From positions 59,768,001 to 59,832,000 of the forward strand of contig OZ038378.1 in the NCBI GenBank assembly GCA_964036045.1: 64,000 nt of DNA. The letters are read 5' to 3'. The notes beneath the pieces are model-generated. The model worked only from the letters and a program-made list of their open reading frames with translations. It ran no database searches and was not told where the DNA came from. Source of the stretch: Eutreptiella sp. 'Long Island Sound 2002'. Lineage: Eukaryota > Protista > Euglenida. This document shows positions 1 through 25,024 of this stretch, in pieces (position 1 is the stretch's first letter; every line of letters begins with the position of its first letter). The position numbers were made by a program, and so were the translations under genes.

Positions 1-503
1 GTCAAATATTTGGTGGGTCTACAGCCCCCAAATATTTGACGGAAGGGGTTCCGTCAAATATTTGGTGGGTCTACAGCCCCCAAATATTTGACGGATGGCG
101 TTCCGTCAAATATTTGGGGGGTGTACAGCCCCAAAATATTTGACGGAAGGGGTTCCGTCAAATATTTGGTGGGTCTACAGCCCCCAAATATTTGACGGAT
201 GGCGTTCCGTCAAATATTTGGGGGGTGTACAGCCCCAAAATATTTCACGGAAGGGGTTCCGTCAAATATTTGCGGGGTGTACAGCCCCCAAATATTTGAC
301 GGAAGGGGTTCCGTCAAATATTTGGGGGGTGTAGAGCCCCAAAATATTTCACGGAAGGGGTTCCGTCAAATTTTTGGGGGGTGTACAGCCCCAAAATATT
401 TCACGGAAGGCGTTCCGTCAAATATTTGGGGGCTCTACACCCCCAAAATATTTGCGTCAAATATTTGGGGGCTCTACACCGCCAAAATATTTCACGGAAG
501 GGG
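1..503. repeat. 52-bp tandem array (~9 copies, truncated by window start); each unit contains a 15-17-bp inverted repeat
   Basis: gtcaaatatt recurs at 1, 53, 105, 157, 209. Within a unit ttccgtcaaatatttgg is the reverse complement of ccaaatatttgacggaa, separated by a ~13-nt spacer. A variant (ggatggcgttcc) recurs at a 104-bp distance. Confidence 0.95.
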
Positions 504-646
504 TCCAATATCTCACCTCCAAAACATCTCGGGGGTATGCCGCGTCCAGGTTCTGTGGTCTCATCTGTACTTTTTCTCCTTGTAGTTTGTTTTTGCCTCA
601 TTACACCTTTCCCTGTGCGAGTTCGCGTTCTGCAAGTTCGCCTACT

Positions 647-862
647 GTGCGCCTTTGAGCCGCAGCTACCTGGCTCGGTCCGAGCCATTGCGCTTCGCGA
701 CTGAACCTTGATTGCCTACTGTGCGTCTTTGAGCCACAACTTTCGGTTTCAGTCTGAGCCACTGCGCTTCGCGACTGAACTCTGGTTGTCTATTGTGCGC
801 CTTTGAGCCTCAGCTTTCGGTTTCAGTCCAAGCCACTGCGCTTCGCGACTAAGCCTTGACGT
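647..862. repeat. 74-bp tandem repeat, ~3 copies
   Basis: gtgcg(c/t)ctttgagcc...gagcca(c/t)tgcgcttcgcgact recurs at ~647, 721 and 795. Confidence 0.9.
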
Positions 863-871
863 AGCCACTGC

Positions 872-2114
872 GTGCCTGTGAGCACCAGCACTTCGTTTGT
901 TGTCATAGCCCTAGCGCTCTCGACAACAAACCCACCAGCAACGGCGTCTCCTGGACCAGCCGGTGAGCCTGAGGACCAGCCCGGCTGGCACTTTGAGTAC
1001 CAAGGACCTGCCCTTGATTGCCCCCCCGAGTTGTGGGACCCCCATAGTGGTCACAGTGGTGGACCCTGCAAGCCTCGAAGGTCACCCAAACCACTAACAG
1101 TCGTGGTGCGCGAGCCAAGCAATGGACCAGCCTGCTGAATGGCCACCGGAGCACTTGCTGGAGCCAGCAAGAATGAAGTATGGCCTAATGCTGGCCACAG
1201 GACAATTGGGGTGGGAGGCCACACCGGAGGTGGCCGGGCGCCTATGGCGACGGTTGAGGGACCGCATGGCCTCACGTGACCTTGACGTGGTGAATCTGCA
1301 TGGTTGCAGGGCATTGTGCCGGTTCATGTACACCGAGCATGGGTTTGCCAAGCCCACCATGCATGATGGGGGGAGCCGCGTGCACTACCGGGATGTTGCC
1401 ACAGACCTGTGGGAACGACTTGCAAACCGGAACCGTGGCCGGCCAGGCAGTCGTCAGGCCGGTGCTATTTCCGGGTTGCCGTCAAGTGTGAAGACAGCAG
1501 AGCAAAGGGACGCTTGGTGTGAACTGGTGCGTGCCCTACCTCTGGTCGACGAGTGGCCGTTCTGGACTGGGGACGTGGCGTATCCCACCCCTACCATGGG
1601 TTACTTCTATGACAAGGCTATTCGCCATGTGACGCCTGGCCCATTTCTGTGGCCCCAAGCGACAAGTGGGCCCAAACCACTGGTGAGCGACCTGTTGCCA
1701 AGCCCCAAGGCGCGCGCTAGCGGTCGGCGCAACTCGTTGCTGCCTGAGGCTGCGGTCCCACGTGCGTGTGTCACTGTCACCCAGACACGGCAAGAGCGCT
1801 TTGACCAAGCGTTGCTGCAAGGCGCCCATGGGGCAGCCCGCTGCCTCACGATTGCATGCCAAGGGCTGCAAGAGCAGCGCCGAGAACCATTGACTGAGGA
1901 CAGCCTGGTGGCAGCATACACGCTGGGCCGCCACTTCGCGAACAGCATGCGGGTGCCTATGCAAGACTGCAACGAGCTCTTGCTGCGTTGCAGCCCCTTT
2001 AGCCCAGAGGTGCCAGACAGTCATCCCGGTCGTCTGAATGCGGCCGTACGGGTTATGGACAACGAATGGAGGGATGATTGAGGGCTTGAGATGCTGCAGG
2101 TACTAGTGGAGGGG
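872..2114 (+). pseudogene. N-terminal region of the polyprotein, no recognisable family (includes the 319-aa ORF 1122-2081)
   Basis: Protein-like, non-repetitive sequence (WRRLRDRMASRDLDVVNLHGCRALCRFMY...). It continues in frame past TGA 2079 into GLEMLQVLVEG and the 44-aa repeats. An upstream extension to 872 needs reading through TAA 1095 and a shift in the C7 run and is less certain. Confidence 0.55.
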
Positions 2115-2505
2115 ATGGAGGCGGCCGGTGTACAGCCAGCATACACCCAACGATTAAGTCCAGGAGGGCACCCCCGAGGTGACCCAAGTGACTCCACGTC
2201 CTTTGCCGTAGCGCAGGGGGTTGGAGCGGCGGTGCGCATGCAGGAGATGGAGGCGGCCGGTGTACAGCGACCGTGCACCCAACCTTTAAGTCAAGAAGGG
2301 CACCCCCGAGGTGACCCAAGTGACTCCACGTCCTCTGCCGTAGCGCAGGAGGTTGGAGCGGCGGTGCCCATGGAGGAGATGGAGGCGGCCGGTGTACAGC
2401 GACCATGCACCCAACGATTAAGTCCAGAAGGGCACCCCCGAGTTGACCCAAGTGACTCCACGTCCTCTGCTGTAGCGCAGGAGGGTGGAGCGGCAGTGCT
2501 CATGG
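2115..2505 (+). repeat. Coding tandem repeat, 3 x 132 bp (44 aa, MEAAGVQ...GHPRGDPSDSTS.AVAQ..GAAV)
   Basis: atggaggcggccgg at 2115, 2247 and 2379; the period is a multiple of 3 and the frame stays open. Confidence 0.95.
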
Positions 2506-3207
2506 CAAGAGACCCCTCAGGCGATGAGTCTGTGACTCCCACTTCGTCCTCCCTGGCACAAGGGCGTGGTCCCCCGGCAGGTGCACATAGGGTGAATAGC
2601 CCTGGTGAGGTGTTACGTCCACCTGCCCCCCCCCCCAGGTGGTGCGAGAGACTCCGCGGCATGTGTTGGACGTGGAACACCGGACCCCTGGTCCCAGGTC
2701 TGCCCCGCCGATGAGTCACACTCCCCGGCCCCCCACCCTGTGTGTCTGACACCGGCAGCTAGTGATGGAGGGGTGGCGAGTTCCTTGGAGGAGTCTCCTG
2801 TACCACTTGCGCAGAAACCCAAGGAGCCAGCTGCTGTGGACTGCAGTCCTTCTAGCACAGGCACTGTGGCGACAGTGAAGGCCTGCAGTCAGTCTAGTGC
2901 GGATTCAGGGTACACCCCGGTTGAACACCCTAGTTCATTGGCGACAGTGAGGGCTTGCCGTCAGTCCAGTGCAGAGTCAGCGACCACCCCGGTTGCACAC
3001 CCCAGTTCTGTGGGACAGAGCCCACGGAGCAAGCCGCGCCCAGGGGTTCCCCCACCAAGTAATGGGGCTGCCGTGAAACGTGGCAAGAAAGAGCAAGGCA
3101 CAAAGACAGCGCCGATAGATCCAGATGCTATGGCATTGGACGACGTGGACAGACAGCGAAGCAAGGCCGAGGTTGGCAGAGTCCTACCAACGGCAAGGTC
3201 CTTGAAG

Positions 3208-3705
3208 CTTCGCATTCTTCCCGACCAATACGTTGCCGGGGCATGTTTCTGCTGTGCCGTGGCCCAAAGCCTGCATGCTATCACCAGCAACACCCCGTTG
3301 GACGGCGCATCGCTGCGGGCAAGGGCCATCGCCGTGTTTCGCGACATGTGTGGGCTTTCAATTCAAGAGTCTACACTATCTGTGAACCGGGATCTTGAGA
3401 AGGACACATGGCGTGGCCGGCCCCAAGGGGGAATGCCTGACCACTTTGCTGCCTTGGCGAAGCATGTGGACGGTAGTGTGGTGTTGCTGCGATCAGACAG
3501 GTACAGCATTGTGACGTCAGGTTTTGGGATCGACAGCGTGTTGACATCCGCTACTGTTTGGGTGCCTGGACGGGAGCATCCGCCGCACTACCGTGACTGT
3601 GGGGATATGGAGGAGCAGTGCCACCGGGCGACGGTGGTGGTTATTGCCGAGGCGGAACGAGATGGTGTCAAAGGAGGTGGTCATTTCCGGGGTGCAGTCT
3701 TTGAC
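3208..3705 (+). pseudogene. OTU-like cysteine protease (deubiquitinase-type) domain
   Basis: YVAGACFCCAVAQSL resembles the OTU motif vpgDGnCLFrAva..l (Cys codon 3244). It is followed by LRARAI (OTU lR..a), QGGMPDHFAALAKHVDGSVVLL (OTU WGG..El.Als......vv) and GGHFRGAV (OTU His motif, codon 3682). The Asp of DGxC is replaced by Ala. Confidence 0.6.
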
Positions 3706-3879
3706 CATTCGCTGCAGGTAGCCCCCTTTTGCACGTTGCACGGGATGATGGGCATCTTGGCATACAAGCGCGGGCCGGTTGGGGGGGTTAGAGCGTTGCA
3801 TTTGCAATTAGGGGTTGGTGGTATGAAGGGCCACACCAATGCAACAGACTGCCGCCGCACTCGTCTAGTGCAACGGACA

Positions 3880-4310
3880 CGCAACTACAAGCCACTGGTG
3901 ACCCTGGTGAACAAGATGGCAAGGGAGATGTTGCCTGATTGGTTCACATGGACCACCATGCAATTGTCTTGCAATGTGCTCACAAAACCGCATCAGCATG
4001 TGCATGACGCGTCCCCTTGGTCGGCAGTGTTTTCCACCGGCCAGCACACACGGGGACACATATGGGTGGAGGTAGGTGGTGTATGTAATGGTCGGGGTGG
4101 ACGGAGATGTAGTATGGAATGCTTGGATGGTATTACACGGGTTGGCGCCACGTACGATGTATGCCAGCAACCGGTTCTCGTACGTACGGGTGCATGGCAT
4201 GGCACTTGTTCTTGGCACGGGGAGAGGAGGTTCGTGGTGTTGTACTTCCGTGGTGACTGGTGGACACTCCCGCCGCGGGACCGTGCATTCCTCAATGAGA
4301 CCGCTTTCCG
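3880..4310 (+). pseudogene. 2OG-Fe(II) dioxygenase-like domain (TET/JBP- or AlkB-related double-stranded beta-helix)
   Basis: FTWTTMQLSCNVLTKPHQHVHDASPWSAVFSTGQHTRGHIWVE ... PVLVRTGAWHGTCSWHGERRFVVLY matches the pattern FT.iqvn.n..t.pH.D..n.g.S.i...G.ftGG.LwvE ... f....wH.t..w.G.R..vv.y. Proximal His at 3991, distal His at 4198, Arg at ~4225; HxD reads HxH. Confidence 0.68.
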
Positions 4311-4363
4311 CTTACATGCAGGTGCATAGTGGGCCACTTGGTGGAGCACCGCGGCGACCATGG

Positions 4364-5229
4364 GGAATGGAGAATCCACATGGGTACAACTGGTGTTGGT
4401 TGGGTACCACGCTGCAGTGTCTGTTGGTGGCGTCGGGTGGACATGAAGGACAGCACGCAGGATGCCTGGACGAGGAGGGTGTCTGGGGACCATTGTGGCA
4501 GGGTGTTGTGGCGCATGGAGGAGGTGGTGCATACAATCCACAGGACATTGCTGAGAGGCTGGCAATGGAGGATGCCATGTGTGAGACGGTGTGCCGATGC
4601 AGCGGGCGATGCAAATGCAAAGCCCCTGCACCAAAATTCCAATCAATGCGGCAGGCGGAGATGCCCGAGTGTTGGAAGTACATGGTGCCCAAGCTCACGG
4701 CCGCTGGGGTGGTTGCTCTGTCATGTTGTTTGTCGTACGAGCAGTTCTGACAATACTGTGGTGCCTGTGGGGTGAAGGTTCTGCGGGAGGGGGGGGAGAC
4801 AGCCATGCCAGCGCAGATATTGCATGTGACGAACCAGGGACAGAGTGTGCGACAGCGTTTGAAGGAGGGAATGAAGGGGAGACCGGTTGGGTTACTTGAC
4901 GACCCCCCCCCCCCCCGTGTCCGTGTGGGGGTGACGTGAGGGAGGCACCAATGTATACATCGGTGGTGTACAACGAGGTCGTGGGGTTACATGTCCACAA
5001 CCAGCAGGAGTACAAGTTGGTTGTGGACCATGAGTTTCTCGATTGCCTGGGGTGGCAATGGTCCTTGCATGCCATGGTGTTGCACATTGGAGCGACGAGG
5101 GAGGAGGGTCACTTTGTGGTGCATGTCGTTTTCAACGACAGGTGGTGGTCGTGTAACGACACCAGGGTGAAGGCCATGAATCCCCCCCCCGACCCGCGAA
5201 AGGCGACGTTTCTGCTATACAAGCGGAAA
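4364..5229 (+). pseudogene. USP / peptidase C19 deubiquitinase catalytic domain
   Basis: Cys box GMENPHGYNWCWLGTTLQCLL (Cys codon 4394); finger cysteines YCGACG and CPCG; His box WSLHAMVLHIGATREEGHFVVHVVFNDRWWSCNDTRV (His 5110, Asn-Asp 5155-5160); terminal ATFLLYKRK (AYxLFYxR-like). Interrupted by TGA 4748 and a shift in the C14 run at 4903-4916. Confidence 0.88.
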
Positions 5230-5304
5230 CATACACATTTGGTTGTACCAGACATGTCGCAGCGTGCCTCCCAACGGACAGGACCGCCGGCCCCTGGTCA
5301 GACA

Positions 5305-5590
5305 CGGGATGCCCGGAGCTTACCTACTGACACCTCGGTGCCACCCATGGCGCTGGCACCAGGTGCGTCCCCCCCCACCCCTCCTTCAACACAGGGTGCA
5401 TCGAGGGTGGGGTACATCAGGAACAGGCCTATGCATGCCCAGAGCGTGCCTATGGACGCCTCTGTGCCAGCCATGGCGCTGGCACAAGGCGCACCCCCCC
5501 CTTCCCCAACTGCAACACAGAGTGCTTCAAGGGCAGGGGACATGAGTACGCATGCCCAGAGCATGCCTAATGAGATGTGTGTGGCTGCCT
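5305..5590 (+). repeat. Coding linker repeat, ~2.3 copies of 117-126 bp (SVP.MALA.GA.PP.P...Q.ASR.G....HAQS.P)
   Basis: ccatggcgctggcac at 5345 and 5471; catgcccagagc at 5434 and 5551. Confidence 0.8.
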
Positions 5591-5616
5591 CGGCGCCGCT
5601 ACAGACGTCCTCATAA

Positions 5617-8050
5617 TTTGTTGAGGCAGTGGCACAGTTGCTGCAGAAGCGCAAGGTGCGGGTGGCAAGGCATCTGAGAGTGCGTGTTGAAGCACACCAG
5701 ATGCAACTGAGAGCACGGCATGCAAAAGAGTGGGATGCGCGGCATGCAGAGCATGGCATGTCACAATCCTTAGTGGCACGATCAGTCGAGCAAGACAGGT
5801 TGAGGTTTGTTGCATCGGCCGCATCGGGGAAGGACGCATTGTGCGTGTTGATGCAGGCCACTCCCATGCAACTGGACAGTGGTCCAAAGACACTACAAAT
5901 GTTTGTAGCCGCTCATTGGCAGTATGAGTTCACGACAAGTGGGGGTGTTGAGTGTGTGTGTTGTGCGTGGGCAAGCGTGTGTGGCATTCCTGGGGTGCCG
6001 CGTCCCCCTAAGAAAAGTGAAGCACTGGTATTGGGAACATATGCTGTAGGGATGCGCATGAAGACCTCCGGCCCAAAAACGTGGCGAGAGGAGGTGTTGG
6101 AAAGCCACTTGGGGTTATCACGTGGCACAACATAAAACCGAAAGAATCTGCATAGGCCAGGGCACCACCACCGATTGGCTGAGGACAGTTTCAAGCTGCA
6201 TTGTGCAGAGCGGTATCGCGCATTTTGCCCCACTGCTGGTGCCACAGCTGTGGTGGTGGGAGCGACCGTTGTGTTCGTCAGGGGGGAAGCCATGGACATT
6301 GGTGTGGCAGTGTCGGATGCTGAGGCAGCCATTCTGTCACGGTTGGTTGAGGTGTATATAGGGTTACGCATGTGCACTTCCATCCGTGCTATAAGTGAGC
6401 GCATCCTTCTGCACTGTTCTCTGACATCCGCCCCTGGGCACCATGCATCACGGCAGTGGATAGTTGAGAAGGCTATTGCCGCAATGCATGATGCCATGCA
6501 GGATGAGGTAACGCATGCCCTATTCCTGGCAACGTTCATTGCAGTGTTGCTTGACGGCTCGGATAGGCAGAGGCATCGCCTCAATGAGTACGCCATTCTG
6601 CTTATTTTCCCGGGGACTGGCCCTGGGGGCATGTGTGAGGTGTTCCTTGGTGTGGTGGATGTGGCCTGTGGTGATGCGCATGAGGTTGCAACGCAGCTAG
6701 AATGCGTCCTGATGTCCTGGATTCCTGACCGTGATTGGTGGGCAAAGAGGGTAGTGACCTTTGCAGTGGACGGGGCTTCTAACCTTGGTGTGCGGGGTGC
6801 CAGTGCGCGGCAGGTTGTTGATGTCTCACACATTGAGAGCAATGTGTTCGCCTTGATTGGGAAGTGGTTAGTGTTGATGACACCCTTGGGTGAGCCGTGC
6901 CATGTGTTGCAGCGCAAGTTGGGTCTTGCATTGGAGGCTGCTGGCCCAACCCATGTTGATTACTTGGCGGCCGTCAATCGGCAACGAGGCTTGTACAATG
7001 GGGCACGGCAGTGGAAGGAGTTGCAAAAGTGTGTGCAAAGGCATGTGCAGGATAAACGTAGTGGCTTGCAGCTCATCCCCACAAGTCATCGCATCAGGTG
7101 GTCACAGGCGCATGCACGGCGCAACACTGCTTTTTTGGCCAATGTCCCTTGGGTGGCACGACACTTGGATTCCAAGGTGCAGCATTCTACCAAGGAGGAG
7201 GATGTGTGGGAGGACTGCCATGATGCCGGTTTGCTTGCATGGGGGGTGGTCTACGGGGACATCCTGCATGGCATGCGGTGTTTTAACAGTGTGGCACAAC
7301 TACGTGCGCCCACTGGTGCACACTTAGCCACTGCAACAGGTATGCTAGAAGCCCGGTTGCAGAGGGTGGCTCGCGAGGAGGGTCCAGGGTGGTTGCAATT
7401 AAAGGAGCAGACTGTAACTGGTGCGTGGCGTGGTGTTGAGTTGGTCCAGTTTGATTCAGGTGGGCAGAAGTGTGCACCAACCCCTCCTTTTCCAGGCGTT
7501 CAGGCGCGTGTAGTGACCGATGTGTTGCTTGCAGGCATCAAGGAGGGGCAGGCAACCATTGACCCCAGGGGGGTGTTGGAGTGCGCAGTCTTGTTGGACC
7601 ATGGCCGTTTCGTTGCCCTCCCGGTCAATGAGCGTGCTGCATATGGGGTGGAGTAGTTGCGTCAGTTCATGACTTCACACCAAGAAGAGTTGGGTGCAGC
7701 CAATGTGAACTGTGACCGTGCCTTGGTAGAGTGGGAAGGCCTTAAGGAGCACATGGTGCAGCACTTTGCAACTGTGCAAATGTCCAAGATGTGGGAGGCA
7801 CTGGCACCTGAAAGGGCACATGCACAGTGGGGGAATGTGTGGCGCGTTCTCGCATTATTGCGAACGTATTGCCCCGCTGAAGCTGCAGTAGAGCGTGCCA
7901 TCTCTTTGCGTGGGAGGTTCTGCAGTAGTATGCATGACACTGTGGAGACACATGTCCTGAGCATGTGCATGGCATTGCATTCCAACTTGCCCCCTTTACA
8001 GCAATGGGCAAAGGGACAAGGCGTTGCAGTGGCACGCCACCTGGCTGCCC
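5617..8050 (+). pseudogene. hAT DDE transposase (ZNF862/ZMYM-like branch by motif appearance) with C-terminal dimerisation domain; in-frame stops at 6133 and 7654
   Basis: FIAVLLDGSD (D codon 6553), VVTFAVDGASNLGVRG (D 6769), PCHVLQRKL (degenerate CxxH region), HRIRWSQ (RW 7096-7101), WGNVWRVLALLRTYCPAEAAVERAISL...HSNLPPLQQW (E 7891; hAT dimerisation motif). Upstream CVCC..W...VLESHLG...HHH may be the N-terminal Zn finger. Confidence 0.9.
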
Positions 8051-8340
8051 ATGCACGCTTCGATCTGCGCCCAAGACAGAGGGTTTCAAAGAAGGTAGGG
8101 GACAGAGAATCTGTGGAGGCTGCAATGCTTCAATGTCTGCAAGGTAATGAAGCAGTGGCTGATGATGGTAACAGCCTGCCCTTCTTTGGAGGGCCGGGTA
8201 CACCACTGAGCTCAACGGCACCCTCATAAAAGGGTACAGAACGGCACCAGGCAGATGTGGTCAGCATTGTTGCACCTGATGGGACCCCTGACTCGCATGC
8301 TGGCAACCATGACTTCATCACTTTTCGCAGAGGTATGGAG

Positions 8341-8700
8341 TGTGCCACATGCAAGAAGGAGGTTCGCATCTGGTGCAATACATGTCTGGTGTGCCATGCA
8401 TGCTTTTGCGCAAGTCCACGTCCTTGTGGGAACGTGGTGGTGAACGTTGTAGATGATGTCTGTGATGAGGGGGAGAACAATAGTGCAGACGAATTGGCCA
8501 CACCACGGAAGCCAAATAAGAGGCGTGGTGTGGCCAGGATGCAGGCGAAATTGGTGATGGCCACGCATAATGGCAGGCTGCGTGATTGGTCAAAGGGGGC
8601 GCTGTTGAACTGTCTGGATGTGCTTGGTGTGAAGGTGGCAGGTAACAGCGATCGCCAGGAACTGCGGGACCTTGCTACGCAGCATGGGTTGCCATTATTG
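8341..8700 (+). pseudogene. C-terminal Cys-rich Zn finger followed by a HeH/SAP-like helix pair
   Basis: CATCKKEVRIWCNTCLVCHACFCASPRPC (C-x2-C-x7-C-x2-C-x2-C-x2-C), then DWSKGALLNCLDVLGVKVAGNSDRQELRDL, which resembles HeH/SAP (l....L...L...gv......K.eL..l). Same frame as the transposase across TAA 8227. Confidence 0.45.
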
Positions 8701-9068
8701 GAAGAATGGGATGCCTTTGTGCCGGACACGGACCGTGTCACCCGTTCTGCGGCACCACCAAGCAGCTCCCAGCCCAGTTGCTCGCAGCCAGTGGATGACA
8801 TTGATGGACTCATCGATGAATGAGAGGATGCCCACGTATTTGCATGTGCCCTTTCGTTGTTGTGTGCTATCTTCGAAGATTTTTCCCATTTTCCCTGTTT
8901 GTACATTTGATTGGATGTTCTGTGGCATTACCACGACCATTTTATTTGTGGAATCTGAATTTAACTGATGCTGATTGCAATGGTCATGATGCAACCCCTT
9001 GAGATGTTTCCCATTTGGCTTTTTTGTGTGGTGGTTGTTCAATTTTCCCACTTTTCCCGGTCCCACAT

Positions 9069-9137
9069 TTTCCCCTTTCCCCTTTCCCCTTTCCCCTTTC
9101 CCCTTTCCCCTTTCCCCTTTCCCGTTTCCCCTTTCCC
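9069..9137. repeat. (TTTCCCC)n microsatellite, ~10 copies
   Basis: Directly visible 7-mer run. Confidence 0.97.
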
Positions 9138-10244
9138 AAAGTACACAAACAAATTGTCTGCTCAAACAACCAAAATTAGAATCAAATTGAAGTTGTCACA
9201 TACACCACTGTCAACAACAGGTGTGCAATTGCTTTCCAAACAGGGGGGTCTGTGTTTTCTGTGGCGCCTTTTCTCCTTGGCGGGGGGGGGGGGGGGGGGG
9301 AGGCTGGAAAGCACCCGATAGGGGGGGGGGGATGGGTGGGGGCGGGGATTGGTGGGGGGCGGGTTTCCTGTGAAGAATTTGGTGTGGACAATGGCGGGGG
9401 GGGGGGGGGGCATTGGACCCCTGGACCCACCTCCAGTACATAAGAATATCAGACATCGTCGTGGACAGACCGCACACACAACATCCCTTATTAGACATCA
9501 GACATCAGACCTTATACACATAGCTGTCCCTTGGTAAACGCTAGAACACCCCATCTTGTTCTAGCCTAGAACATCTAGACTAGATTTTCTAGCTCAGAAT
9601 GGTGCTCGCCTGGAACACAAAGCGTTCCAGCCTGGAATGGTAGAATAGGTAGAACATAAAAAAACAAATTACCACAGTGGCTTGGGGGGTGCATGACACA
9701 CACACTCATAGCAACCAACACACTTGACACATGCGTACACATATGCCCCCCCCCCCCAGCATACACACAGTTTTGCAAAGGGATATGCACAACACAACAC
9801 ACAACATACAATCTCAAGGGTGGGAAGGGTGGGTAAGAGGCCAAACACAAGCACCGCAAAAACACCCCCTCAGTATCGAGCTATCAGCCCCCCCTCCTTT
9901 CCATGTTGTGGTCTGGGTTATGGGGCCCCTGCTTGTTGCGCTTAAGTTTAGGGAGGGTATCCATTGCCTCTTTGCAGGTGTGCTCGTTTTTTTGATTGGG
10001 GTGAAGAAGTGGGTGCACACCGACACCAAGAGGTAGGTGTGTTACTCCTTCCCTCCCCCCTGCCATGTGTGTCGGTGGTATGGGGTTGCTCAGTGTACAG
10101 GTTCCCCCTTCCCAGCATCCCTCCCCCCTTGCCCCTCCCCCTCCCCGCTTGGTTACGCAGTGTGCTGTACGGGTCAATGGTATGGTTTGTCCCCCCTCCT
10201 CCTAGGTTATGCAATCCCCCCCCCTGTGTGCACCGGTACCTGGC

Positions 10245-10420
10245 TTGTTGGTTGGTTGGCTGTTAGTTTTCGGTTTGCTTGGTTGGTTGTTGCGTTGGTT
10301 GGTTGGTTGTTGGTTCATTGGTTCTGGCAGAGCTGAGTTTGGCTGGTTCGTTGGTTGGTTGGTTGGTTGGTTGGTTGGTTGGTTGGTTGGTTGGTTCGTT
10401 CGTTGTTTGGTTGGTTGTTG
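10245..10420. repeat. (TTGG)n microsatellite, pure core at 10351-10396
   Basis: Directly visible. Confidence 0.97.
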
Positions 10421-10556
10421 GCTAGTTGGTGGGGTGTATGTGTGTGTATTGTCTGGACACGTGCTGTCTGGTGTTGTTGCACAGTGCGTCTGTGTGTAAG
10501 CATGCTTGTGCAGCCATTGCAAGCGTCTTTTGGGGGGGTTTGTGCACATTTCATTT

Positions 10557-10689: not shown

Positions 10690-11470
10690 ACAACCGCGCT
10701 GCATTAGTGCATTAGTCACCGGGGCAAAAACAACATTTTTTTCCAAAGTTGTTCTTGGACCATTCGGGATGCTCGAACAAGTGTTTTTCGGCATTTCGAG
10801 ATTGTTGTGTCCTGTTTTGGTCCACAAATAATTCCCAAAGGTCCCTCAAATGCGCCGCTTTATGATGCACTTTGGGTCAAGATGGGTACACAAAACAAAG
10901 TAGTGTGTATTGAAAACTAATGTGAATTTCGGCCATTACTCCGTTGCTCTACTCTATTCTACTCTAGCCATCTCATACCGGAGGTGGTGCCCCTTGTTCT
11001 ATCCAATTTTGGAGCCAAAAACTCACCGCTGGTGCGCCGCGGCGGGGGTACCAAGTCGAGAGGTGCCCTCGCAGAACTACTCCTTTTGTTCCCGAAATTG
11101 GCGTTTTTGGCCCAAAACGGCCCCGAAATCCATTCAAATTGGCGAAAGGAATGGAAACGTTTTGTGCAATGACTTGCGCCTTGAGTTCCTCATGATGAAG
11201 AGCCCTTTGTTGCCGTCCAACTCCGAGGTACTTGCGAGAAATGGCCCCAAAAATGGCTAAAATGTGTGTAGTTTGTGTCAAACAGCCCCAAAACCAAGAA
11301 TGGGCCGTATCTTCGGCTATGTGGCTCAAATCCGACTTCACAGGGCACCCAGTGCACCCGCAACGCCGCACGGTTTGTGGTTTCCGAGCCTCACAATTAC
11401 CCAATGAGATGCCTAGACCCGGGTACCATTGGTGACGTGGTGGAGCGGGAGGGCACCCCGACCCGCGCAT
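10690..11470 (+). repeat. Dispersed copy of 'module A' of the 3.3-kb composite repeat
   Basis: Shares aaaactcaccgctggtgc, aagagccctttgttgcc and gtttgtgtcaaacagccccaaaaccaagaa with 22950-23750, 24220-25260, 30000-31200 and 33450-34440. Confidence 0.9.
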
Positions 11471-11502
11471 GGCTGGGGCGAATGCACCTCATGGCACCAT
11501 AA

Positions 11503-15358: not shown

Positions 15359-18300
15359 AGGTGCACTGTATGGGCAAAAAAGCCTATGAGCCCCAAAATG
15401 GTGCAACTTGTGTCTTCAACTTCTCCGAGTGCCCGTCCCCGATGGACCCGATTCTTTTTCTAGTCGTTGCGGGTTCCCATAAGTTACGTATATTGTCGAC
15501 AACCGTGCATTCAGTGCTCATCAACAGGGCACACCACCTCAAATGCCATTAGTCACCAGTGCAGGGGTTTTCATTCCATCAACTAGGCGCAGTATGGACA
15601 AAAAAGCCAATAACCCCCCCAATGGTGCAACTTGTGACTTCGACTTCTCCAAGTGACCGTGCCCAAGGACCCAATTCTTTTTCCGGTCGCTGCGACGTCC
15701 CCTAGTGTACGTATACTGACCACAACAGTACATTAGCTCCCCGTGGGCAGGGCAAAACACCTCAAATGCCATCACTTTGCAATGTAGGGGTTTTCATTGT
15801 ATCAGCTAGGCGCAATATGGGCAAAAAAGCCGGTAACCCCCCAAAGGGTCCAACTTGTGCCTTTGTGTTCTCCAAGCGCCCGTCCCTGATGAGTCGCCGC
15901 AGCCTCCACATAGCGCACGCATACTAAGCATGACTGTTCATTAGCTCCCCCTGGGCAAGGCACAACACCTCAAATGCAATTAGTAATCGGGGTGTGTGTG
16001 TGCATTCTATCAACTAGGCGCAGTGTAGACAAAAAAGCCAATAACCCCCCCAAAGGGTCCAAGTTGTGCCTTCGAGTTCTCCGAGTACCCGTCTTGAATG
16101 GACCCAGTTCTTTTTCTAGTGGCTGCGGCGTCCCCTAGCATACGTATGCTGACCACAACTGTGCATTAGCTCCCCGTGGGCAGGGAATAACACCTCAAAT
16201 GCCATTAGTCAGTAGTGTAGGGGTTTTCATTCTATCAGCTAGGCGCAGCACGGGCAAAAAAGCCAATCACCCCGAAATGGTGCAACTTGTGTCTTCGAGT
16301 TATCCAAGTGCCTGTCCCCGTTGGACCAAGCTGTTTTTCCAGTCGCTACTACGCCCCCTAGCGTACACATGCTAACCATCACCGTGCATTAGCTCCCCGT
16401 GGGGAGGACACAACACCTCAAATGCCCTCAGTTAGCAGTGCCGGGGTTTTGTTTCTATCAGCTAGGCGCAGTATCCGCAAAAAAGGCAACAACCCCCCAA
16501 AGGGTCCAACTTGTGCCTTTGAGTTCTCGGAGTCCCCGTCCCCGATGGACCCAATTCTGTTTTCAGTGGCTGCGGCGTCCTGTGGCGTACGTATACTGAC
16601 CACATCTGTGCATTAGCTCCCCATGGGCAGCGCACAAAACCCGAAATGCCATCAGTGAGCAGTGCAAGGGTTTTCATTCCATTAGTTAGGCACAGTATGC
16701 GCACAAAAGCCAATAACCCCGGAAATGGTGCAACTTGTGCCTTCGAGTTCTCCAAGCGCCATTCCCCGATGGACCCCATTGTTTTTCAAGTTGCTGCGGG
16801 GTGTCCTAGCGTACACATACGAACCATAACTGTGCATTAGCTCCCCGTGGGCAGGGCACAACACCTCAAATGCCATGAGTTAGCGGTGCATGGGTTTCCA
16901 TTCTATTAGGTAGGCGCATTAGGGGCAAAAAAGCCAGTAACCCCCCAAAGGGTCCAACTTGTGCCGTCCATTTCTCCAAGTGACCATCCCCGATGGACCT
17001 AATTCTTTTTCGAGTGTAGGCTGGCATCCCCTAGCGTACGCATACTAACCAAATTTGTGCATTATCTCCCCGTGGCCGGGGCACAACACCTTAACCGCCA
17101 TCGGTTAGCAATGCAAGGGTTTTTATTTTATTAGTTAGCCGCATTATGGGCAAAAAGGCCAAAACCCCCCCGAAGCGTCCAACTTGACCCTTCCAATTCT
17201 CCAAGTGCCCATTCCCTATGGACCCAATTCTTTTCTGAGGCGCGGCGATGCGCCCTAGCGTACCTATACTAACCACAAGTGTGCATTAGCTCCCCGTGGG
17301 CAAGGCGCAAAACGTCAAATAGCCATCAGTGAACAGTGTCGGAGCTTTTATTCTATCAGCTAGGCGGAGTATGGGCAAACAAGCGAAAAATGCACCAAAG
17401 CCTCCAACTTGTGCCTTCGAGTTCTCCAAGTGCCCATCCCCTGTGGACCCAATTGTGTTAATAGTCGCTGCAACGTCCCCTAGCATGCACATACGAACCA
17501 TAAGTGCGCATTAGCTCCCCGTGGGCAGGGCACAACACCTGAAATGCAATCACTTAGCAGTGCACGGGTTTTCATTCTATGAGCTAGGCGGAGTACGCAT
17601 AAAAAAGGCCAATAACCCCACAAAGGTTCCAACTTGTGTCTTCCAGTTCTCCGAGTCCCCGTTGCCGATGGACCCAAATATTTTTTCATAGCTGAGCGTC
17701 CCCTAGCGCACGTATACTAACCATACCTGTGCATTAGCTCCCCGTGGGCAGGGCACAACACCTCAAATGCCATTAGTTAGCAAGGCACGGGTTTTCATTC
17801 TATCAGCTAGGCGTAGTATGGGCAAAAAGCCCAATAATCCCCCAAAGGGTCCAACTGGTGCCTTCGTGTTCTCCAAGTGCTTGTCCCCGATGGCCCCAAT
17901 TGTTTTTTCGACCGCTGCGGCGTCCCCTAGCGTACGCATACTAACCATAACTGTGCATTGGCGCCCCGTGGGCGGGGGACAACACCTCAAATGCCATCAA
18001 TCGGCAGTGCAGGGGTTTTCATTCTATCAACTAGGCGCAGTAAGGGCAAAAAAGCCAATAACCCCCCCAATGGTTCAACTTGTGCCTTTGACTTCTCCAA
18101 GTGACCGTGCCCAATGGACCCAATTCTTTTTCCGGTCGCTGCGACGTCCCCTAGCATACGTATACTGACCACAACGGTGCATCAGCTCCCCGTGGGCAGG
18201 GCCGAACACCTCAAATGCCATCACTTAGCAGTGTGGGGTTTTTCATTGTACCAGCTAGGCGCAATATGGGCAAAAACGCCAATAACCCCCCAAAGGGTCC

Positions 18301-21300
18301 AACTTGTGCCTTTGTGTTCTCCAAGCGCCCGTCCCTCATGGACCCCATTCTTTTTCAATCGATGTTGCCTCCCCGTAGCGTACGCATACTAAGCATAACT
18401 TTGCATTAGCTCCCCGTGGGCATGGCACAACAAACGTGTGCCGAATGTAGAAGTGTTTCAAGCATTCATGTAGCCTACAAGCCTGTCCTGCACCCGTGGT
18501 CTCTCCCTGAATAAGGGATCAGCTGTGGTGTGGGAACCCATTCCAACGGGTCAGGTTTCGTAGATCGCTTGAAGAGCGTTGAAATGCAAACGTGTGCGGA
18601 AGGTAGAAGTGTTTCAACCATTCATGAAAATGCAATCAGTCATCGGGGCCGGGGTGTGCATTCTATCAACTAGGCGCAGTATAGGCAAAAAAGCCAAAAA
18701 AAACTCCCAAAGGGTCCAAGTTGTGCCTTCGACTTCTCCGAGCACCCGTCCTGAATGGACCCGGTTTTTTTTCTAGTGGCTGCAGCGTCCCCTAGCATAC
18801 GTATGCTGACCACAACTGTGCATTAGCTCCCCGTGGGCAGGGAACAACACCTCCAATGCCATTAGTCAGTAGTGTAGGGGTTTTCATTCTATCAGCTAGA
18901 CGCAGCACGGGCAAAAAAGCCAATCACCCCGAAATGGTGCAACTTGTGTCTTCGAGTTATCCAAGTGCCTGTCTCCGATGGACCAAGCTGTTTTTCCAGT
19001 CGCTACTACGTCCCCTAGCGTACACATACTAACCATAACTGTACATTAGCTCCCCGTGGGGAGGACACAACACCTCAAATGCCCTCATTTAGCAGTGCCA
19101 TGGTTTTCTTTCTATCAACTAGGCGCAGTATCGGCTAAAAAGCCAACAACCCCCCCAAGGGTCCAACTTGTGCCTTCGAGTTCTCGGAGTCCTCGTCCCC
19201 GATGGACCCAATTCTGTTTCTAGTTGCTGCGGCGTCCCGTGGCGTACGTATACTGACCTTAGTTGTTCGTTAGCTCCCCATGGGCAGCGCACAAAATCTG
19301 AGATTCCATCAGTGAGCAGTGCAAGGGTTTTCATTCCATTAGTTAGGCACAGTATGCGCACAAAAGCCAATAACCCCCGAAACGGTGCAACTTGTGCCTT
19401 CGAGTTCTCCTAGCGCCATTCCCCGATGGACCCCATTGTTTTTCAAGTTGCTGCGGCGTCTCCTAGTGTACGCATACGAACCATAACTGTTCATTAGCTC
19501 CCCGTGGGCAGGGCACAACACCTCAAATGCCATGGGTCAGCGGTGCCTGGGTTTCCCTTCTATCTGGTAGGCCCATTAGGGGCGGGGGGGCCAGTGGCCC
19601 CCCAAAGGGTCCAACTTGTGCCGTCCATTTCTCCAAGTGCCCATCCCCGATGGACCCAATTCTTTTTCGAGTGGAGGCGGTGTCCCCTAGCGTATGCAGA
19701 ATGACCAAAAGTGTGCATCAACTCGCCGTGGTCAGGGCACAACACCTTAAACGCCATCAATTGGCAATGCAAGGGTTTTTCTTCTATCATTTAGCTCCAT
19801 TATGGGCAAAAAGGCCAAAACCCCCCCGAAGCGTCCAACGTGAGCCTTTGAATTCTCCAAGTGCCCATTCCCTATAGACCCAATTCTTTTTTAAGGCGCG
19901 GCGATGCGCCGTAGCGTACCTATACCAACCAGAATTGTGCATTAGCTCCCCGTGGGCAAGGCACAACACCTCAAATGCCATCAATCAGCAGTGTGGGGGT
20001 TTTCATTCTATCAGCTAGGCGAAATATGGGCAAAAAAGCCAAAAAAACCCCAGAGCGTTGAACTTGTGCCTTCGAGTTCTCCAAGTGCCCGTCCTCTTTG
20101 GACCCAATTCTGTTTATAGTCGCTGCAACGTCCCCTAGCATGCACATACGAACCATAAGTGCGCATTAGCTCCCCGTGGGCAGGGCACAACACCCGAAAT
20201 GCAACCACTTAGCAGTGCACGGGTTTTCATTCTATCAGTTGGGCGGAGGACGCATGGAAAAAGCCAATAACCCCACAAAGGGTCCAACTTGTGTCTCCGA
20301 GTTCTCCGAGTCCCCGTCCCCGATGGACCCAAATATTTTTCCATAGCTGAGCGTCCCCTAGCGTACGTATACTAACCATACCCGTGCATTAGCTGCCCGT
20401 GGGTAGGACCAACACCTCAAATGCCATCGGTTGGCAATGCACCGGTTTTCATTCTATCAGCTAGGCGTAGTATGGGCAAAAAGGCCAATAATGCCCCAAA
20501 GGGTCCAAATGGTGCCTTCGTGTTTCCCAAGTGCTTGTCCCCGATGGACCCAATTGTTTTTCCTACCGCTGTAGCGTCCCCTAGCGTATACATACTAACC
20601 ATAACTGTGCATTTGCTCCCCGTGGGCAGGGGAAAGCACCTCAAATGCCCTCCTTCGGCAGTGCAGGGGTTTTCATTCTATCAACTAGGCGCAGTAAGGG
20701 CAAAAAAGCCAATAACCCCCCCAATGGTGCAACTTGTGCCTTCGACTTCTCCAAGTGACCGTGCCGAATGGACCCAATTCTTTTTCCGGTCGCTGCGACG
20801 TCCTCTAGCGTACGTATACTGACCACAAGAGTGCATTAGCTCCCCGTGGGCAGGGCCGAACACCTCAAATACCATCACTTAGCAGTGTAGGGGTTTTCAT
20901 TGTATCAGCTAGGCGCAATAGGGGCAAAAAAGCCGATAACCCCCCAAAGGGTCCAACTTGTGCCTTTGTGTTCTCCAAGCGACGGTCCCTCATGGACCCC
21001 ATTCTTTTTCCCGTCGCCGTTGCCTCCCCATAGCGTACGCATACTAAGCATAACTATGCATTAGCTCCCCGTGGGCAAGGCACAACACCTCAAATGCAAT
21101 CAGTCATCGGGGCAGGGGTGTGCATTCTATCAACTAGGCGGAGTATAGGCAAAAAAGCCAATAACCCCCCCAAAGTGTCCAAGTTGTGCCGTCGAGTTCT
21201 CCGAGTACCCCTCCCGAATGGACCCAGTTCCTTTTCTAGTGGCTGCGGCGTCCCCTAGCATACATATGCTGACCACAACTGTGCATTAGCTCCCCGTGGG

Positions 21301-21936
21301 CAGGGAACAACACCTCATATGCCATTAGTCAGTAGTTTAGGGGTTTTCATTCTATCACCGAGGCGCAGCACGGGCAAAAAAGCCAATAACCCCCGAAATG
21401 GTGCAAGTTGTGTCTTACAGTTATCCAAGTGCCTGTCCCCCATGGACCAAGCTGTTTTTCTAGTCGCTACTACGTCCCCTAGCATGCACATGTTAACCAT
21501 AACTGTGCATTAGCTCCCCGTGGGGAGGACACAACACCTCAAATGCCCTCATTTAGCAGTGCCGGGGTTTTCTTTCTATCAGCTAGGCGCAGTATCGGCA
21601 AAAAAGCCAACAACCCCCCAAAGGGTCCAACTTGTGCCTTCGAGTTCTCGGAGTCCCCGTCCCCAATGGACCCAATTCTGTTTCCAGTTGCTGCGGCGTC
21701 CCGTGGCGTACGTATACTGACCACAACTGTGCATTAGCTCCTTGTGGGCAAGGCACAACACCTCAAATGCCATCAGTCAGCAGTGTAGGGGTTTTCATTC
21801 TATCAGCTGGGCGGAGTATGCTCAGAAAAGCCCAAAACCCACCAAAGCGTCCAACTTGTGCCTTCGAGTTCTCCAAGTGCCCGTCTCCTGTGGACCCAAT
21901 TCTTTTTATAGTCGCTGCAACGTCCCCTAGCATGCA
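15359..21936. repeat. 224-bp satellite, ~28 monomers, diverged 11-mer higher-order structure
   Basis: aaatgc at 15541, 15764, 15972, 16197, 16420, 16644, 16868. The monomer variant ccaagtgaccgtgcc...ttccggtcgctgcgacgtcc recurs in monomers starting 15541, 17991 and 20643 (11 monomers apart). Confidence 0.95.
18431..18628. other. ~196-bp foreign insert in the 224-bp satellite, bounded by 40-bp direct repeats
   Basis: caaacgtgtgccgaatgtagaagtgtttcaagcattcatg (18431-18470) vs caaacgtgtgcggaaggtagaagtgtttcaaccattcatg (18587-18626). Confidence 0.9.
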
Positions 21937-22517: not shown

Positions 22518-25024
22518 AAGTTTGCCACTGACGAAAACCCAAGCTGTGTGTTTTCGTCTGAGCGGACATAAATGCCACCACGGCTGCCGCCCCCCTCCTT
22601 GGAAGTTCCACTTTATTTGCCACCATCTATGACCTTTTTGAACGCCCCAACACGGGAGGGGGGGGGTCCGGGAAAGGGACTGCCACTTTGCAAACCAATT
22701 TTCCCCCACCGTTGTGCTATTGGTTCTATACACGTTGATCGTTGTTGTGCGATGCAAAGAACTAACTAACTAGCACTCAAGTAGCTAATGTGATTGCATT
22801 CGTGTAAGTGAATCCTCGTTTGGACCTGCATCGTCACTCCTCCTTCATGGGCCATATTTGGCGTTAATCAGTTTCATTTGCCTTCGCGAACTCAGTATGT
22901 TGGTTATGTATTCGTGCCGGGCCTGTCCACCAGGGTTCTTTGTGGGGTGAGTGATATACAAAACAAAGCAGTGTGCATTGAAAAGTAATGTGCGTTTCGG
23001 CCCATATATGTTACTTCACTCCACTCTACTCAACTCTAGCCATCTCATACCGGAGGTGGTGCCCATGTCAAATCCAGTTTTGCAGCCAAAAACTCACCGC
23101 TGGTGCCCCTGGGCGGGGGCGCCAAGTCCGGAGGTGCCCTCCGAAAACTCCTCTTTTTGTGCCCCAAATTAGCCTTTTTGGCCCAAAATGGCCCCGAAAG
23201 TCATGTAAAAAGGCAAAAGGGAGGGAAAAGGTTTGTACACTTCACGTGCGCTTTCACTTCGTCATCATAAAGAGCCCTTTGTTGCCCTCCAACTCCAAGG
23301 TATGTTGGAGAAACGCCCCGAAAATGGCTAAACATGGCCCAAATTTGTGTAGTTTGTGTCAAACAGCCCCAAAACCAAGAACGGGCCGTATCTTGGGATA
23401 CGTGGCTCCATTCCGAATTCCCAGGGCACCTAGTCGGCCAGCAACCCCCCACGGTTTCCAAGCCTCAAAATTACCCAACGAGACGCCCAGACCCCCGTAC
23501 CATCGGTCACGAGGTCGAGCCGGAGGGCAGTCCGGCCCGCGCACGGCGGGGGCCAACTGTGTGAGCACCAGGGTCCCCGGGGCAAAAAAACATTTTTTCC
23601 AACGTTGCTCCCAGGCCACTCGAGATGCTCAAACAAATGATTTTAGCCCTTTTTGAGCCTATAGTGACCGCGCTTTGGCCCATTGAAAATGCCAAAATAC
23701 CCTGAAAATGCGCCATTTTGGGACGTCAAATGGTTCCAAAATGGCTCAAAAACGCAAAGTTTGCCACTGACGAAAACACAAATTGTGTGTTTTTGTCCGA
23801 GCGAACATAAATACGACGATGGCTGCCGCCCCCCTCCTTGGAAGTTTAACTTTATATGCCACAATCGAAGACCTTTTTGAACGCCCTGTCACGGGAGGGG
23901 GGGGGTCCGGGAAAGGGGCTTCAACGGCATCCCCCCCCCCCCCCCCCCGCCACTGTGCAAACCAATTGTCCCCCACCCTTATGCTATTGGTTCTATATAT
24001 GCAGATCGTTGTTGTGCGATGCAAAGAACTAACTAACTAGCACTCAAGTAGCTAATGCAATTGCATTCGTGTAAGTGAATCCTGGTGTGGAGCTGCATTG
24101 TCACTCCTCCTTCATGGGCCATATTTGGCGTTAATCGGTTTCATTTGCCTTCGCGAGCTCAGTATATTCGATATGTATTCGTGCCGGGCCTGTGCACAAG
24201 GGTTCTTTGTGGGGTGAGTGATATACAAAACAAAGCAGTGCGCATTGAAAAGTAATGTGTGTTTCGGCCGATGTATGTTACTTCACTCTACTCTACTTCA
24301 CTCTAGCCATCTCATACCGGAGGTCCTGCCCATGTCAAATCCAGTTCTGGAGCCAAAATCTCACCGCTGGTGGCCCGGTGCAGGGGCGCCAAGTCCGGAG
24401 GTGCCCTCCGAAAACTCCTCTTTTTGTGTCCCAAATTAGCCTTTTTGGCCCAAAATGGCCCCGAAATCCATTCAAAATGGCAAAAGGGGGGGAAAAGGTT
24501 TGTACACTCCACGTGCGCTTTGATTTCGTCATCACAAAGAGCCCTTTGTTGCCCTCCAACTCCAAGATATGTCGGAGAAACGCCCCGAAAATGGCTAAAC
24601 ATGGCCCAAATTTGTGTAGTTTGTGTCAAACAGCCCCAAAACCAAGAACGGGCCGTATCTTGGGATACGTGGCTCAAATCCGAATTCCCACGGCACCTAA
24701 TCAGCCAGCAACCTCCCACGGTTTCCAAGCCTCAAAATTACCCAACGAGAGGCCCAGACCCCGGTACCGTCGGGCACGAGGTGGAGCCGGCGGGCAGTCC
24801 GGCCCTGCGCACGGCGGGGGCCAACTGTGTGTGCACCAGGGTCCCCGGGGCAAAAAAACCATTTTTTCCAACGTTGCTCCCAGACCACTCGGGATGCTCA
24901 AACAAATGATTTTAGCCCTTTTTGAGCCTATAGTGACGCGTTTTGGCCCATTGAAAATGCCAAAATACCCTGAAAATGCGCCATTTTGGGACGAAAAATG
25001 GTTCCAAAATGGCTCAAAAACGCA
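22518..25024 (+). repeat. ~1.25-kb direct tandem duplication inside unit 1
   Basis: aagtttgccactgacgaaaac at 22518 and ~23758; ORF-track homologues at 22951 and 24218. Confidence 0.9.

Follow-up and report, generated by a model that had tools for sequence, protein, structure and literature searches.

What kind of element encodes the chain of long open stretches on the plus strand at the left end of a 64,000-nucleotide region of the genome of the euglenid Eutreptiella sp. 'Long Island Sound 2002' (contig OZ038378.1, positions 59,768,001 to 59,832,000; "the window" hereafter denotes this whole region)? The chain, which occupies ~1100-8820 (1098 to 8820) in frames 3, 1, 2 and 1 with a GC content of 55-62%, consists of genuinely collinear open reading frames (ORFs), as had been proposed in an earlier reading made from the sequence alone (the sequence-only reading). 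That reading joined them into a single ORF of ~2,650 codons in a hAT transposon delimited at 872-8823, in which ovarian tumour (OTU)-like protease, dioxygenase, ubiquitin-specific protease (USP), transposase and zinc finger/HeH-like regions would follow one another. Our comparison with other copies supports a different architecture: window positions 1-9526 would represent the right-hand ~9.5 kb of a dead copy from a giant, ~18-19 kb family of autonomous-type hAT DNA transposons, a reading to which we assign a probability of roughly 0.8. The structure of the element, with 14-bp terminal inverted repeats (TIRs), 8-bp target site duplications (TSDs), two ORFs and a USP fused to the transposase within one ORF, was observed directly.

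The boundaries follow from loci fetched around paralogous ORFs (L001, L002, L003, L004, L005, L008 and L009; paralogue and homologue ORFs are denoted by P numbers). Up to position 9526 the window shares 93-97% identity with L001 and 96.6% with L008, and similarity to both stops exactly there, at ...TATACACATAGCTG. Since the reverse complement of this right end is found once upstream in each of the two loci, two complete elements could be defined. The first extends from L002 3977 to L001 13017 (17,860 bp) between TSDs GTTGGGAC and GTAGGGAC, which match at 7 of 8 positions, and the second from L009 4288 to L008 14712 (19,421 bp) between perfect 8-bp copies of GCGGTGAG. The 14-bp TIR, CAGCTATGTGTATA, is perfect at both ends of both complete copies. 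L003, a copy from a divergent subfamily, retains the right TIR with one mismatch; its left end was not located within the fetched 10 kb. GACATCA repeats adjoin the TIR at both ends of the element, and roughly 250 bp next to one terminus recur in inverted form next to the other with 88% identity. In the window, the 3′ non-coding subterminal region (8824-9526, plus strand) includes GACATCA repeats as well as a (TTTCCCC)n run (9069-9137), and it closes with the right TIR (9513-9526). Directly after this TIR comes the position at which the right TSD copy is expected (9527-9534), which reads TCCCTTGG; the left TSD lies beyond the window. The window copy thus runs from before position 1 to 9526 rather than from 872 to 8823, with its left 8-10 kb outside the window. 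The order in a full element is left TIR, superfamily 1 (SF1) helicase, palindrome array, ORF-A, ORF-B and right TIR.

In its source genome, this is an abundant and fairly young family. When a 506-aa piece of the transposase (window 6136-7653) was used as a query, 98 paralogous ORF clusters were recovered at 62-97% identity, all from one ENA assembly with megabase contigs; a piece of the OTU/dioxygenase part recovered 20 more clusters, and one ORF-A cluster counts 173 members. Family sequences also turned up in runs that bear two organism labels and in the JGI metagenome contig L007, and two estuary metatranscriptomes contain them at low depth. Within the window itself, self-BLAST yielded no other copy of the element and only unrelated repeats downstream, and an Rfam scan matched nothing. 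The domain array has the same order in all other copies fetched (L001/L002, L008/L009, L004 and L005), as well as in the divergent L003, and a single element bounded by TIRs and TSDs always encloses the transposase together with the protease, dioxygenase-like and USP parts; the co-occurrence on which the sequence-only reading depended is therefore borne out. Several copies have suffered internal deletions. L001 carries a clean 743-bp deletion (window 3954-4696 relative to L001 8215/8216), which removes the C-terminal part of the dioxygenase-like region and the USP Cys box, whereas in P0065, P0096 and L004 other internal deletions fuse distant parts of the ORFs. Such deletions are typical of Ds-like deletion derivatives.

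The assignment of the element to the hAT superfamily draws on several lines of evidence. The transposase core (window 6400-8100, plus strand) contains D at 6553-6555, D at 6769-6771, C-H at 6898-6903, R-W at 7096-7101 and E at 7891-7893, and the positions given by the sequence-only reading for both aspartates, the RW pair and the glutamate, as well as for the two USP boxes discussed below, proved exact. The glutamate lies within an ERAIS motif matching the hAT C-terminal dimerisation signature, and the family also bears RW and VDGAS motifs. The 8-bp TSDs (one perfect and one matching at 7 of 8 positions in the complete copies) and the short TIR of the CAG.../YARNG type are those expected of hAT elements. 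A HMMER search of 1.84 billion representative sequences with a family profile returned mostly fragments of the same family together with a few remote homologues. One of these, P0258 (E = 6.9e-8 against the family profile; hhalign 95.7%), carries the Pfam domain Dimer_Tnp_hAT (PF05699) above its cut-off (E = 2.6e-7), and its LERAFS motif is aligned with the VERAIS of the family. The P0165/P0266 group shows 26% identity over ~560 columns (hhalign 99.6%), and in the remote homologues P0266, P0169, P0247 and P0258 (19-34% identity) both aspartates, the histidine after C, HRIRW and the glutamate are conserved. Broadening the profile (A6) added only one weak match, P0286 (E = 2.6e-4 against the broadened profile), which likewise carries PF05699. 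Finally, the Atlas language-model neighbours of P0007 are FAM200/ZBED5, DUF4371 and Dimer_Tnp_hAT clusters, with a score of 0.93. Given the homologue chain, the conserved motifs, the Atlas neighbours and the combination of TIR and TSD, hAT membership can be regarded as established as far as sequence and element structure are concerned, although not as regards the RNase-H-like fold.

TSDs of 8 bp also occur outside the hAT transposons, and the family matches no Pfam hAT model directly, so that an origin in another superfamily with 8-bp TSDs, such as P elements or Zisupton/KDZ, has to be weighed. The Dimer_Tnp_hAT domain of the remote homologue, however, sits exactly where the ERAIS motif of the family aligns, and the hAT-derived Atlas neighbours, the RW and VDGAS motifs and the CAG-initial TIR all point in the same direction, which makes an affiliation outside hAT very improbable.

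The coding capacity of the hAT family is split between two ORFs in different frames, and not contained in a single ~2,650-codon ORF. ORF-A (window 1122-4329, plus strand) is a pseudogene in the window, with a TGA at 2079 and a frameshift in a poly-C run at ~2626-2641, and ends at its native stop, TAG 4327-4329. Its intact counterpart, P0276 (1,048 aa; L005 10001-13147), starts at an ATG matching window position 1173. ORF-A encodes an N-terminal domain of no assigned kind, 44-aa repeats, the OTU-like region and the dioxygenase-like region; the repeats correspond to three copies of a 132-bp coding unit (2110-2512, plus strand) and are followed by two copies of a 72-bp repeat (2867-3008, plus strand). 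The stop codon of ORF-A is present in every copy examined: P0099, P0100, P0102, P0103, P0275, P0276 and the window all end in ...FRLHAGA or ...FHLHAGA followed by the stop, and in L003 the stop is located one codon earlier. ORF-B (window 4295-8823, plus strand; ~1,508 codons in the family) is likewise a pseudogene here and terminates in TGA 8821-8823. Its first conserved ATG, at 4295, is in the +1 frame, giving a 35-nt overlap with the 3′ end of ORF-A; this ATG is found in the window, L005, L003 and P0094, with the USP Cys box ~29 codons downstream. The order within ORF-B is USP, hAT transposase, Cys-rich region and C-terminal tail.

In the window copy, ORF-B is interrupted by TGA 4748, a poly-C frameshift at ~4903, TAA 5614, TAA 6133, TAG 7654 and TAA 8227. 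With the defects of ORF-A, this amounts to six premature stops and two poly-C frameshifts (~2630 and ~4903), and the window copy is a pseudogene, because paralogues carry sense codons at the stops of ORF-B and at 2079, GGA (8227-8229) and TGG (4748-4750) appear in contigs of sequencing runs, and the changes of frame fall in poly-C runs. An alternative genetic code was also considered, since the only interruptions of frame 1 between 4900 and 8820 are lone TAA or TAG codons (5614, 6133, 7654 and 8227), and this frame terminates in TGA. Reading TAA and TAG as sense codons was rejected: the paralogues have E, S, Q and G at these positions, and the run contigs have GGA at 8227.

The fusion of the USP with the transposase in one ORF is solid and is seen in three copies and two subfamilies. 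Three paralogues, P0390 (1,337 aa), P0313 (1,314 aa) and P0405 (1,199 aa), are open without a stop: each begins within the USP domain or shortly ahead of its His box and continues past the transposase as far as, or close to, the C-terminus. L008 reads all ~1,508 codons of ORF-B in one frame that contains a single stop. The USP (peptidase C19) domain occupies the N-terminus of ORF-B (window 4364-5229, plus strand) and was recognized by Pfam UCH and by a Cys box read directly from the translation. Pfam UCH matches window 4900-5613 with E = 4.6e-7 and 30.1 bits against a gathering cut-off of 23.9, an alignment that spans only the His-box end of the model, the Cys box being read by eye; paralogue P0094 gives an equivalent match (E = 4.3e-7, 30.2 bits) and also has a precomputed PF00443 annotation. 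The Cys box (4382-4405, with C at 4394-4396) reads ...NPHGYNWCWLGTTLQCLL, recurs in P0094 and L003, and conforms to the pattern G-x-x-N-x-G-x-x-C-[WYF]-x-x-x-x-L-Q-C-L. The His box lies at 5101-5124 with its histidine at 5110-5112, and the aspartate expected alongside the catalytic histidine (Asp or Asn in such enzymes) is at 5158-5160. All three catalytic residues, Cys, His and Asp, are retained in the divergent subfamily (P0094 and P0405).

The link between the OTU/dioxygenase part and the USP-transposase is, by contrast, not solid, since the former is a separate ORF with a conserved stop; the expectation of one intact ORF enclosing all domains thus holds for the USP and the transposase and fails for the remainder. 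The two ORFs overlap, are collinear and preserve their overlap between subfamilies, as would be expected if a programmed +1 frameshift, or an unconventional splice within the 35 nt that they share, joined them into one ~2,550-aa polyprotein, in line with the single giant product pictured by the sequence-only reading. We consider this unlikely. The ORF-A stop is conserved, the ORF-B ATG is at the same place in both subfamilies, and a GT-AG intron of at most ~50 nt would fit into the sequence that separates the ORF-A stop from the USP Cys box. Furthermore, contigs cross the ORF-A/ORF-B junction unspliced (X4 record 18 and X1 record 4), one of them from an RNA library. A conventional intron joining ORF-A to ORF-B was rejected on the same grounds, the only GT-AG options being implausibly short and the contigs crossing the junction unspliced. 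A programmed +1 frameshift or reinitiation is still conceivable.

The identity of the enzymes encoded by ORF-A is less secure. The putative OTU-like cysteine-protease region (window 3208-3705, plus strand) contains a candidate Cys at 3244-3246 (AGACF) and a candidate His at 3682-3684 (GGGHF), ~146 aa apart and both conserved in the divergent P0065, P0111 and L003. In an Atlas feature search with residues 655-865, 48 of the 100 nearest clusters carry PF02338 (OTU), at a score of only 0.77, which is in the range that the tool itself labels as a lead only and that shuffled sequences also reach. The putative dioxygenase-like region, of the double-stranded beta-helix/cupin-like kind (3880-4310, plus strand), contains H-Q-H at 3991-3999, D at 4006-4008, H at 4198-4200 and R-R at 4225-4230; the arrangement H-Q-H-x-x-D, a distal H 65-69 aa further on and RR 9-10 aa later is conserved across subfamilies. 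Atlas matches for the C-terminal part of ORF-A are Fe2OG and Tet_JBP clusters with scores of 0.72-0.77. Profile searches lend no support to the OTU, dioxygenase and HeH calls of the sequence-only reading: neither OTU (E up to 10 in Pfam), nor 2-oxoglutarate (2OG)/TET-JBP, SAP/HeH or zinc finger models were matched in Pfam, PHROGs, NCBIfam or PDB, which leaves the first two as weak leads, at 0.77 each together with the conserved motifs.

One or both labels may accordingly be wrong, and the regions may represent another papain-like protease, a non-2OG cupin or non-enzymatic folds, with no effect on the rest of our reading. Besides the four silent libraries and the shuffled-sequence range of the Atlas scores, such mislabelling would account for the lack of an OTU-type Asp before the candidate Cys, and H-x-H is found more typically in cupins than in 2OG oxygenases. 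On the other hand, the named Atlas neighbours are consistent, all being OTU for residues 655-865 and all Fe2OG, Tet_JBP or 2OG-FeII for the C-terminal part; the order Cys-then-His and its spacing fit OTU proteases, the spacing H..H(~65 aa)H(+9-10)RR fits 2OG enzymes of the prolyl-hydroxylase type, and the candidate catalytic residues are conserved across subfamilies. On balance, the region around the Cys-His pair of ORF-A probably adopts an OTU fold, the motifs and neighbours favour by a smaller degree a dioxygenase fold for its C-terminal region, and mislabelling of at least one of them is a substantial if less favoured prospect.

Codon-by-codon comparison of the window with L003 indicates how the modules have evolved. 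The proportion of nonsynonymous differences (pN) relative to that of synonymous ones (pS) is 0.32 to 0.73 in the OTU and dioxygenase part, 0.30 to 0.82 in the Cys half of the USP, 0.185 to 0.65 in the transposase core and 0.29 to 0.65 in the C-terminal region. All in-frame pieces outside the ORF-A/ORF-B overlap, including the N-terminal region of ORF-A, have pN of 0.18-0.38 and pS of 0.61-0.83, and two off-frame control alignments give ratios of 0.85 and 1.45. As judged from these codons, every module was clearly kept by purifying selection while the two subfamilies diverged, which argues against passively captured host fragments. DNA transposons often capture pieces of host genes, and the copies in hand are decayed, as might be expected if the accessory domains were products of transduplication with no function for the element. 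Nevertheless, the same domain order is maintained in subfamilies with saturated synonymous sites, in every accessory domain pS greatly exceeds pN, the off-frame controls being near 1, the catalytic residues are retained, and the ORFs are long and intron-free; transduplication without function is hence a highly unlikely explanation.

Several observations weigh against our reading of the locus. In addition to the missing direct match to Pfam hAT models, family profiles A3, A5 and A6 matched nothing meaningful among PDB sequences, and AlphaFold2 models of the transposase (A3) and of the OTU and dioxygenase part (A5) both had a mean confidence (pLDDT) of 31 and were unusable, because the alignments contain only paralogues, so that fold-level confirmation was not obtained; Foldseek searches with these two models gave noise. 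The dioxygenase-like region does not have the canonical HxD and hence not the 2OG-Fe(II) triad, its motif being H-x-H..D. Synonymous sites between the subfamilies are saturated, which makes dN/dS rough. All four young-subfamily copies inspected closely have at least one ORF disrupted. For transcription, which the sequence-only reading had proposed to check with RNA sequencing, no convincing evidence was found: the RNA-labelled runs with family sequence are two estuary metatranscriptomes, the contigs are sparse and of very low depth, with possible DNA carry-over, and no splice joints occur in them. The well-covered runs, for which the library type is not on record, look like DNA. In run X4 (a second organism label), depth rises ~20-fold from 5′ to 3′ over window 3000-8900 and is flat in the other runs; the gradient could reflect many 5′-deleted copies in that strain or 3′-biased RNA, the library type of this run not being on record.

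To the left of ORF-A, the complete copies contain, beyond the start of the window, ~3.5 kb of decayed sequence with proline-rich repeats, followed by the SF1 helicase. The helicase is of the Upf1-like kind with AAA_11 and AAA_12 domains: in L001, Pfam AAA_11 is matched with E = 5.9e-11 and AAA_12 with E = 5e-6 (26.6 bits against a cut-off of 27), and the precomputed matches to PF13087 and PF13086 in L008/L009 are stronger than those in L001. The window opens, at 1-504, within a tandem array of a 52-bp unit (TRF period 52, 8.7 copies, 91% matches) that is cut by the window start. The unit is itself a near-perfect palindrome of ~48 bp, formed by inverted-repeat arms, and is unrelated in sequence to the TIR or the subterminal repeats. 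Other copies have the same palindrome array interposed between helicase and ORF-A, where it measures ~2.2 kb in L001 (3003-5161), ~3.6 kb in L008 (taken as the distance from the helicase ORF to where similarity to the window sets in) and >9.4 kb in L005 (1-9406). Together with internal deletions, it probably explains much of the difference in size between copies. Three copies of a 74-bp tandem repeat (640-861, plus strand) lie upstream of ORF-A and are kept in L001 (5160-5340) and in metagenome contig L007; that they serve as a promoter or leader is a guess. A 174-bp piece of the ORF-B linker (window 5406-5579), from a region of 126-bp coding repeats, is duplicated with 98% identity in L001 2621-2794, just upstream of the palindrome array within the same element.

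The remaining features of ORF-B flank the transposase core. A CxCC...H...HHH stretch is present at 5953-6200; with regard to a BED-type finger, the relative P0266 alone gave a match, a weak one to zf-C17orf113 (E = 0.019). A Cys-rich motif at 8341-8409 (plus strand), a putative zinc finger with no Pfam match, is kept in paralogues, and a similar CxxC-rich motif occurs in P0266. Further downstream, the putative HeH/SAP-like stretch (8602-8676, plus strand) was identified by motif and matches no Pfam model at E up to 10.

Comparison with known systems places the family within hAT while setting it apart in several respects. It shares with Ac, hobo, Hermes and Buster/ZBED5/FAM200 the 8-bp TSD, the short CAG TIR, the D, D, C-H, RW and E motifs, the ER-x-(F/I)-S dimerisation signature and the formation of internal-deletion derivatives (here L001, L004, P0065 and P0096). 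Unlike those elements, it is 18-19 kb rather than ~3-5 kb long, encodes a transposase of ~1,500 aa rather than 600-800 aa with an N-terminal USP, carries two further genes and a kilobase-scale palindrome array, and escapes the Pfam hAT models. Proteases specific for ubiquitin-like proteins are known as cargo of other cut-and-paste transposons, namely the Ulp1 SUMO-proteases of Kaonashi MULEs, CACTA and Zisupton, but these are clan C48 enzymes associated with different transposase superfamilies and are usually encoded by a separate gene. The remote relative P0266 (ENA ERZ28668935) is a stand-alone transposase of 1,068 aa that shares the catalytic motifs of the family and has a comparable Cys-rich motif at its C-terminus; it has no USP, its N-terminus bearing instead the weak zf-C17orf113/BED-like finger. 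As this relative lacks the protease, the USP fusion looks like an addition specific to the lineage studied here.

Two published systems offer further parallels. Several superfamilies of fungal DNA transposons, among them a hAT lineage, carry TET/JBP genes that precede the transposase gene and share its orientation (PMC12730594). The dioxygenase-like region of our family likewise lies upstream of the transposase and in its orientation, as in hAT7 of Puccinia, for which a counter-silencing role was proposed; it differs in being putative, in having H-x-H instead of HxD and in its fusion to an OTU-like protease, and the host is a euglenid and the TSD is 8 bp, not 7 (PMC12730594). Helitrons encode a VTD deubiquitinase, sometimes with OTU, that has been proposed to shield transposition proteins from the proteasome (PMC9741609). 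As in Helitrons and Helentrons, a deubiquitinase is part of the same polypeptide as the transposition enzyme, two deubiquitinase classes are possible and a helicase is present, but the former rely on a rolling-circle RepHel that includes the helicase and on VTD/OTU, whereas the element described here combines a DDE transposase, a USP and a separate SF1 gene (PMC9741609). No hAT-USP or other DDE transposase-USP fusion was found described in the searchable literature; a hAT element with TET/JBP has already been published (PMC12730594).

If the family behaves like other hAT transposons, ORF-B would bind the subterminal GACATCA repeats and the TIRs, excise the element via hairpin intermediates and reinsert it with an 8-bp staggered cut. 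By analogy with the Helitron deubiquitinases, the tethered N-terminal USP might act in cis, removing ubiquitin from the transposase itself, which would protect it from the proteasome, or from ubiquitinated chromatin or repair factors at donor and target sites. More speculatively, ORF-A could supply a second deubiquitinase-like protease and possibly an oxygenase acting on nucleic acids or proteins, and the helicase and the palindrome array might take part in DNA handling or self-recognition; ORF-A enzymes and helicase together might then help the element to escape host restriction. Transposons that bring ubiquitin-like proteases or TET/JBP oxygenases with them are believed to counteract silencing by their hosts, and the sequence-only reading had suggested for this locus an anti-silencing role through oxidation of DNA bases and deubiquitination, which is purely inferential and in our view doubtful. 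Equally tentative is the broader notion of a toolkit, in which an active USP fused to a DDE transposase, an OTU-type deubiquitinase, a nucleic-acid-modifying oxygenase and a helicase would edit ubiquitin marks and DNA bases around the element for its movement and continued expression, with the palindrome array as a cis-acting site. Were the toolkit to exist, the euglenid host would offer base J, a hydroxylated and glucosylated thymine, as a candidate substrate pathway.

An in-frame hAT transposase-USP fusion would extend the theme of protease cargo to a new enzyme class, a new transposase superfamily and a poorly studied eukaryotic lineage, and it has been kept under selection with three other enzyme-like modules. 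Given that the protease is covalently tied to the transposase, mutation of one cysteine should reveal whether deubiquitination is needed for transposition. The family is also large and abundant, so that a curated model would improve annotation: in the chromosome-level analysis of Euglena gracilis, in which this family is not described, repeats make up 58.84% with 32.73% unclassified, automated annotation leaving about a third of the repeats without a class (PMC11252322).

Other repeats accompany the element in the window and at related loci. A (GGTT)n-type microsatellite at 10240-10450 lies ~700 bp downstream of the right end of the element. A repeat of ~600 bp occurs five times in the window with 76-79% identity (10887-11482, 22955-23556, 24222-24824, 29992-30602 and 33459-34031), and ORFs in two of its copies (222 and 276 aa) have no Pfam match. 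A large satellite-like array with a period of ~224 bp, in which copies are ~77-91% alike, extends over 15368-21933. In L003, repeated perfect 22-bp palindromes, GCTGGCCGAAATTTCGGCCAGC, flank two ORFs at 62-2672, upstream of the divergent copy, and look like another, probably nested, element. At the opposite side of the same locus, the right terminus of the divergent copy is found twice together with an identical flank, at 16228 and 19574, 3,346 bp apart, which suggests a segmental duplication that included the end of the element.

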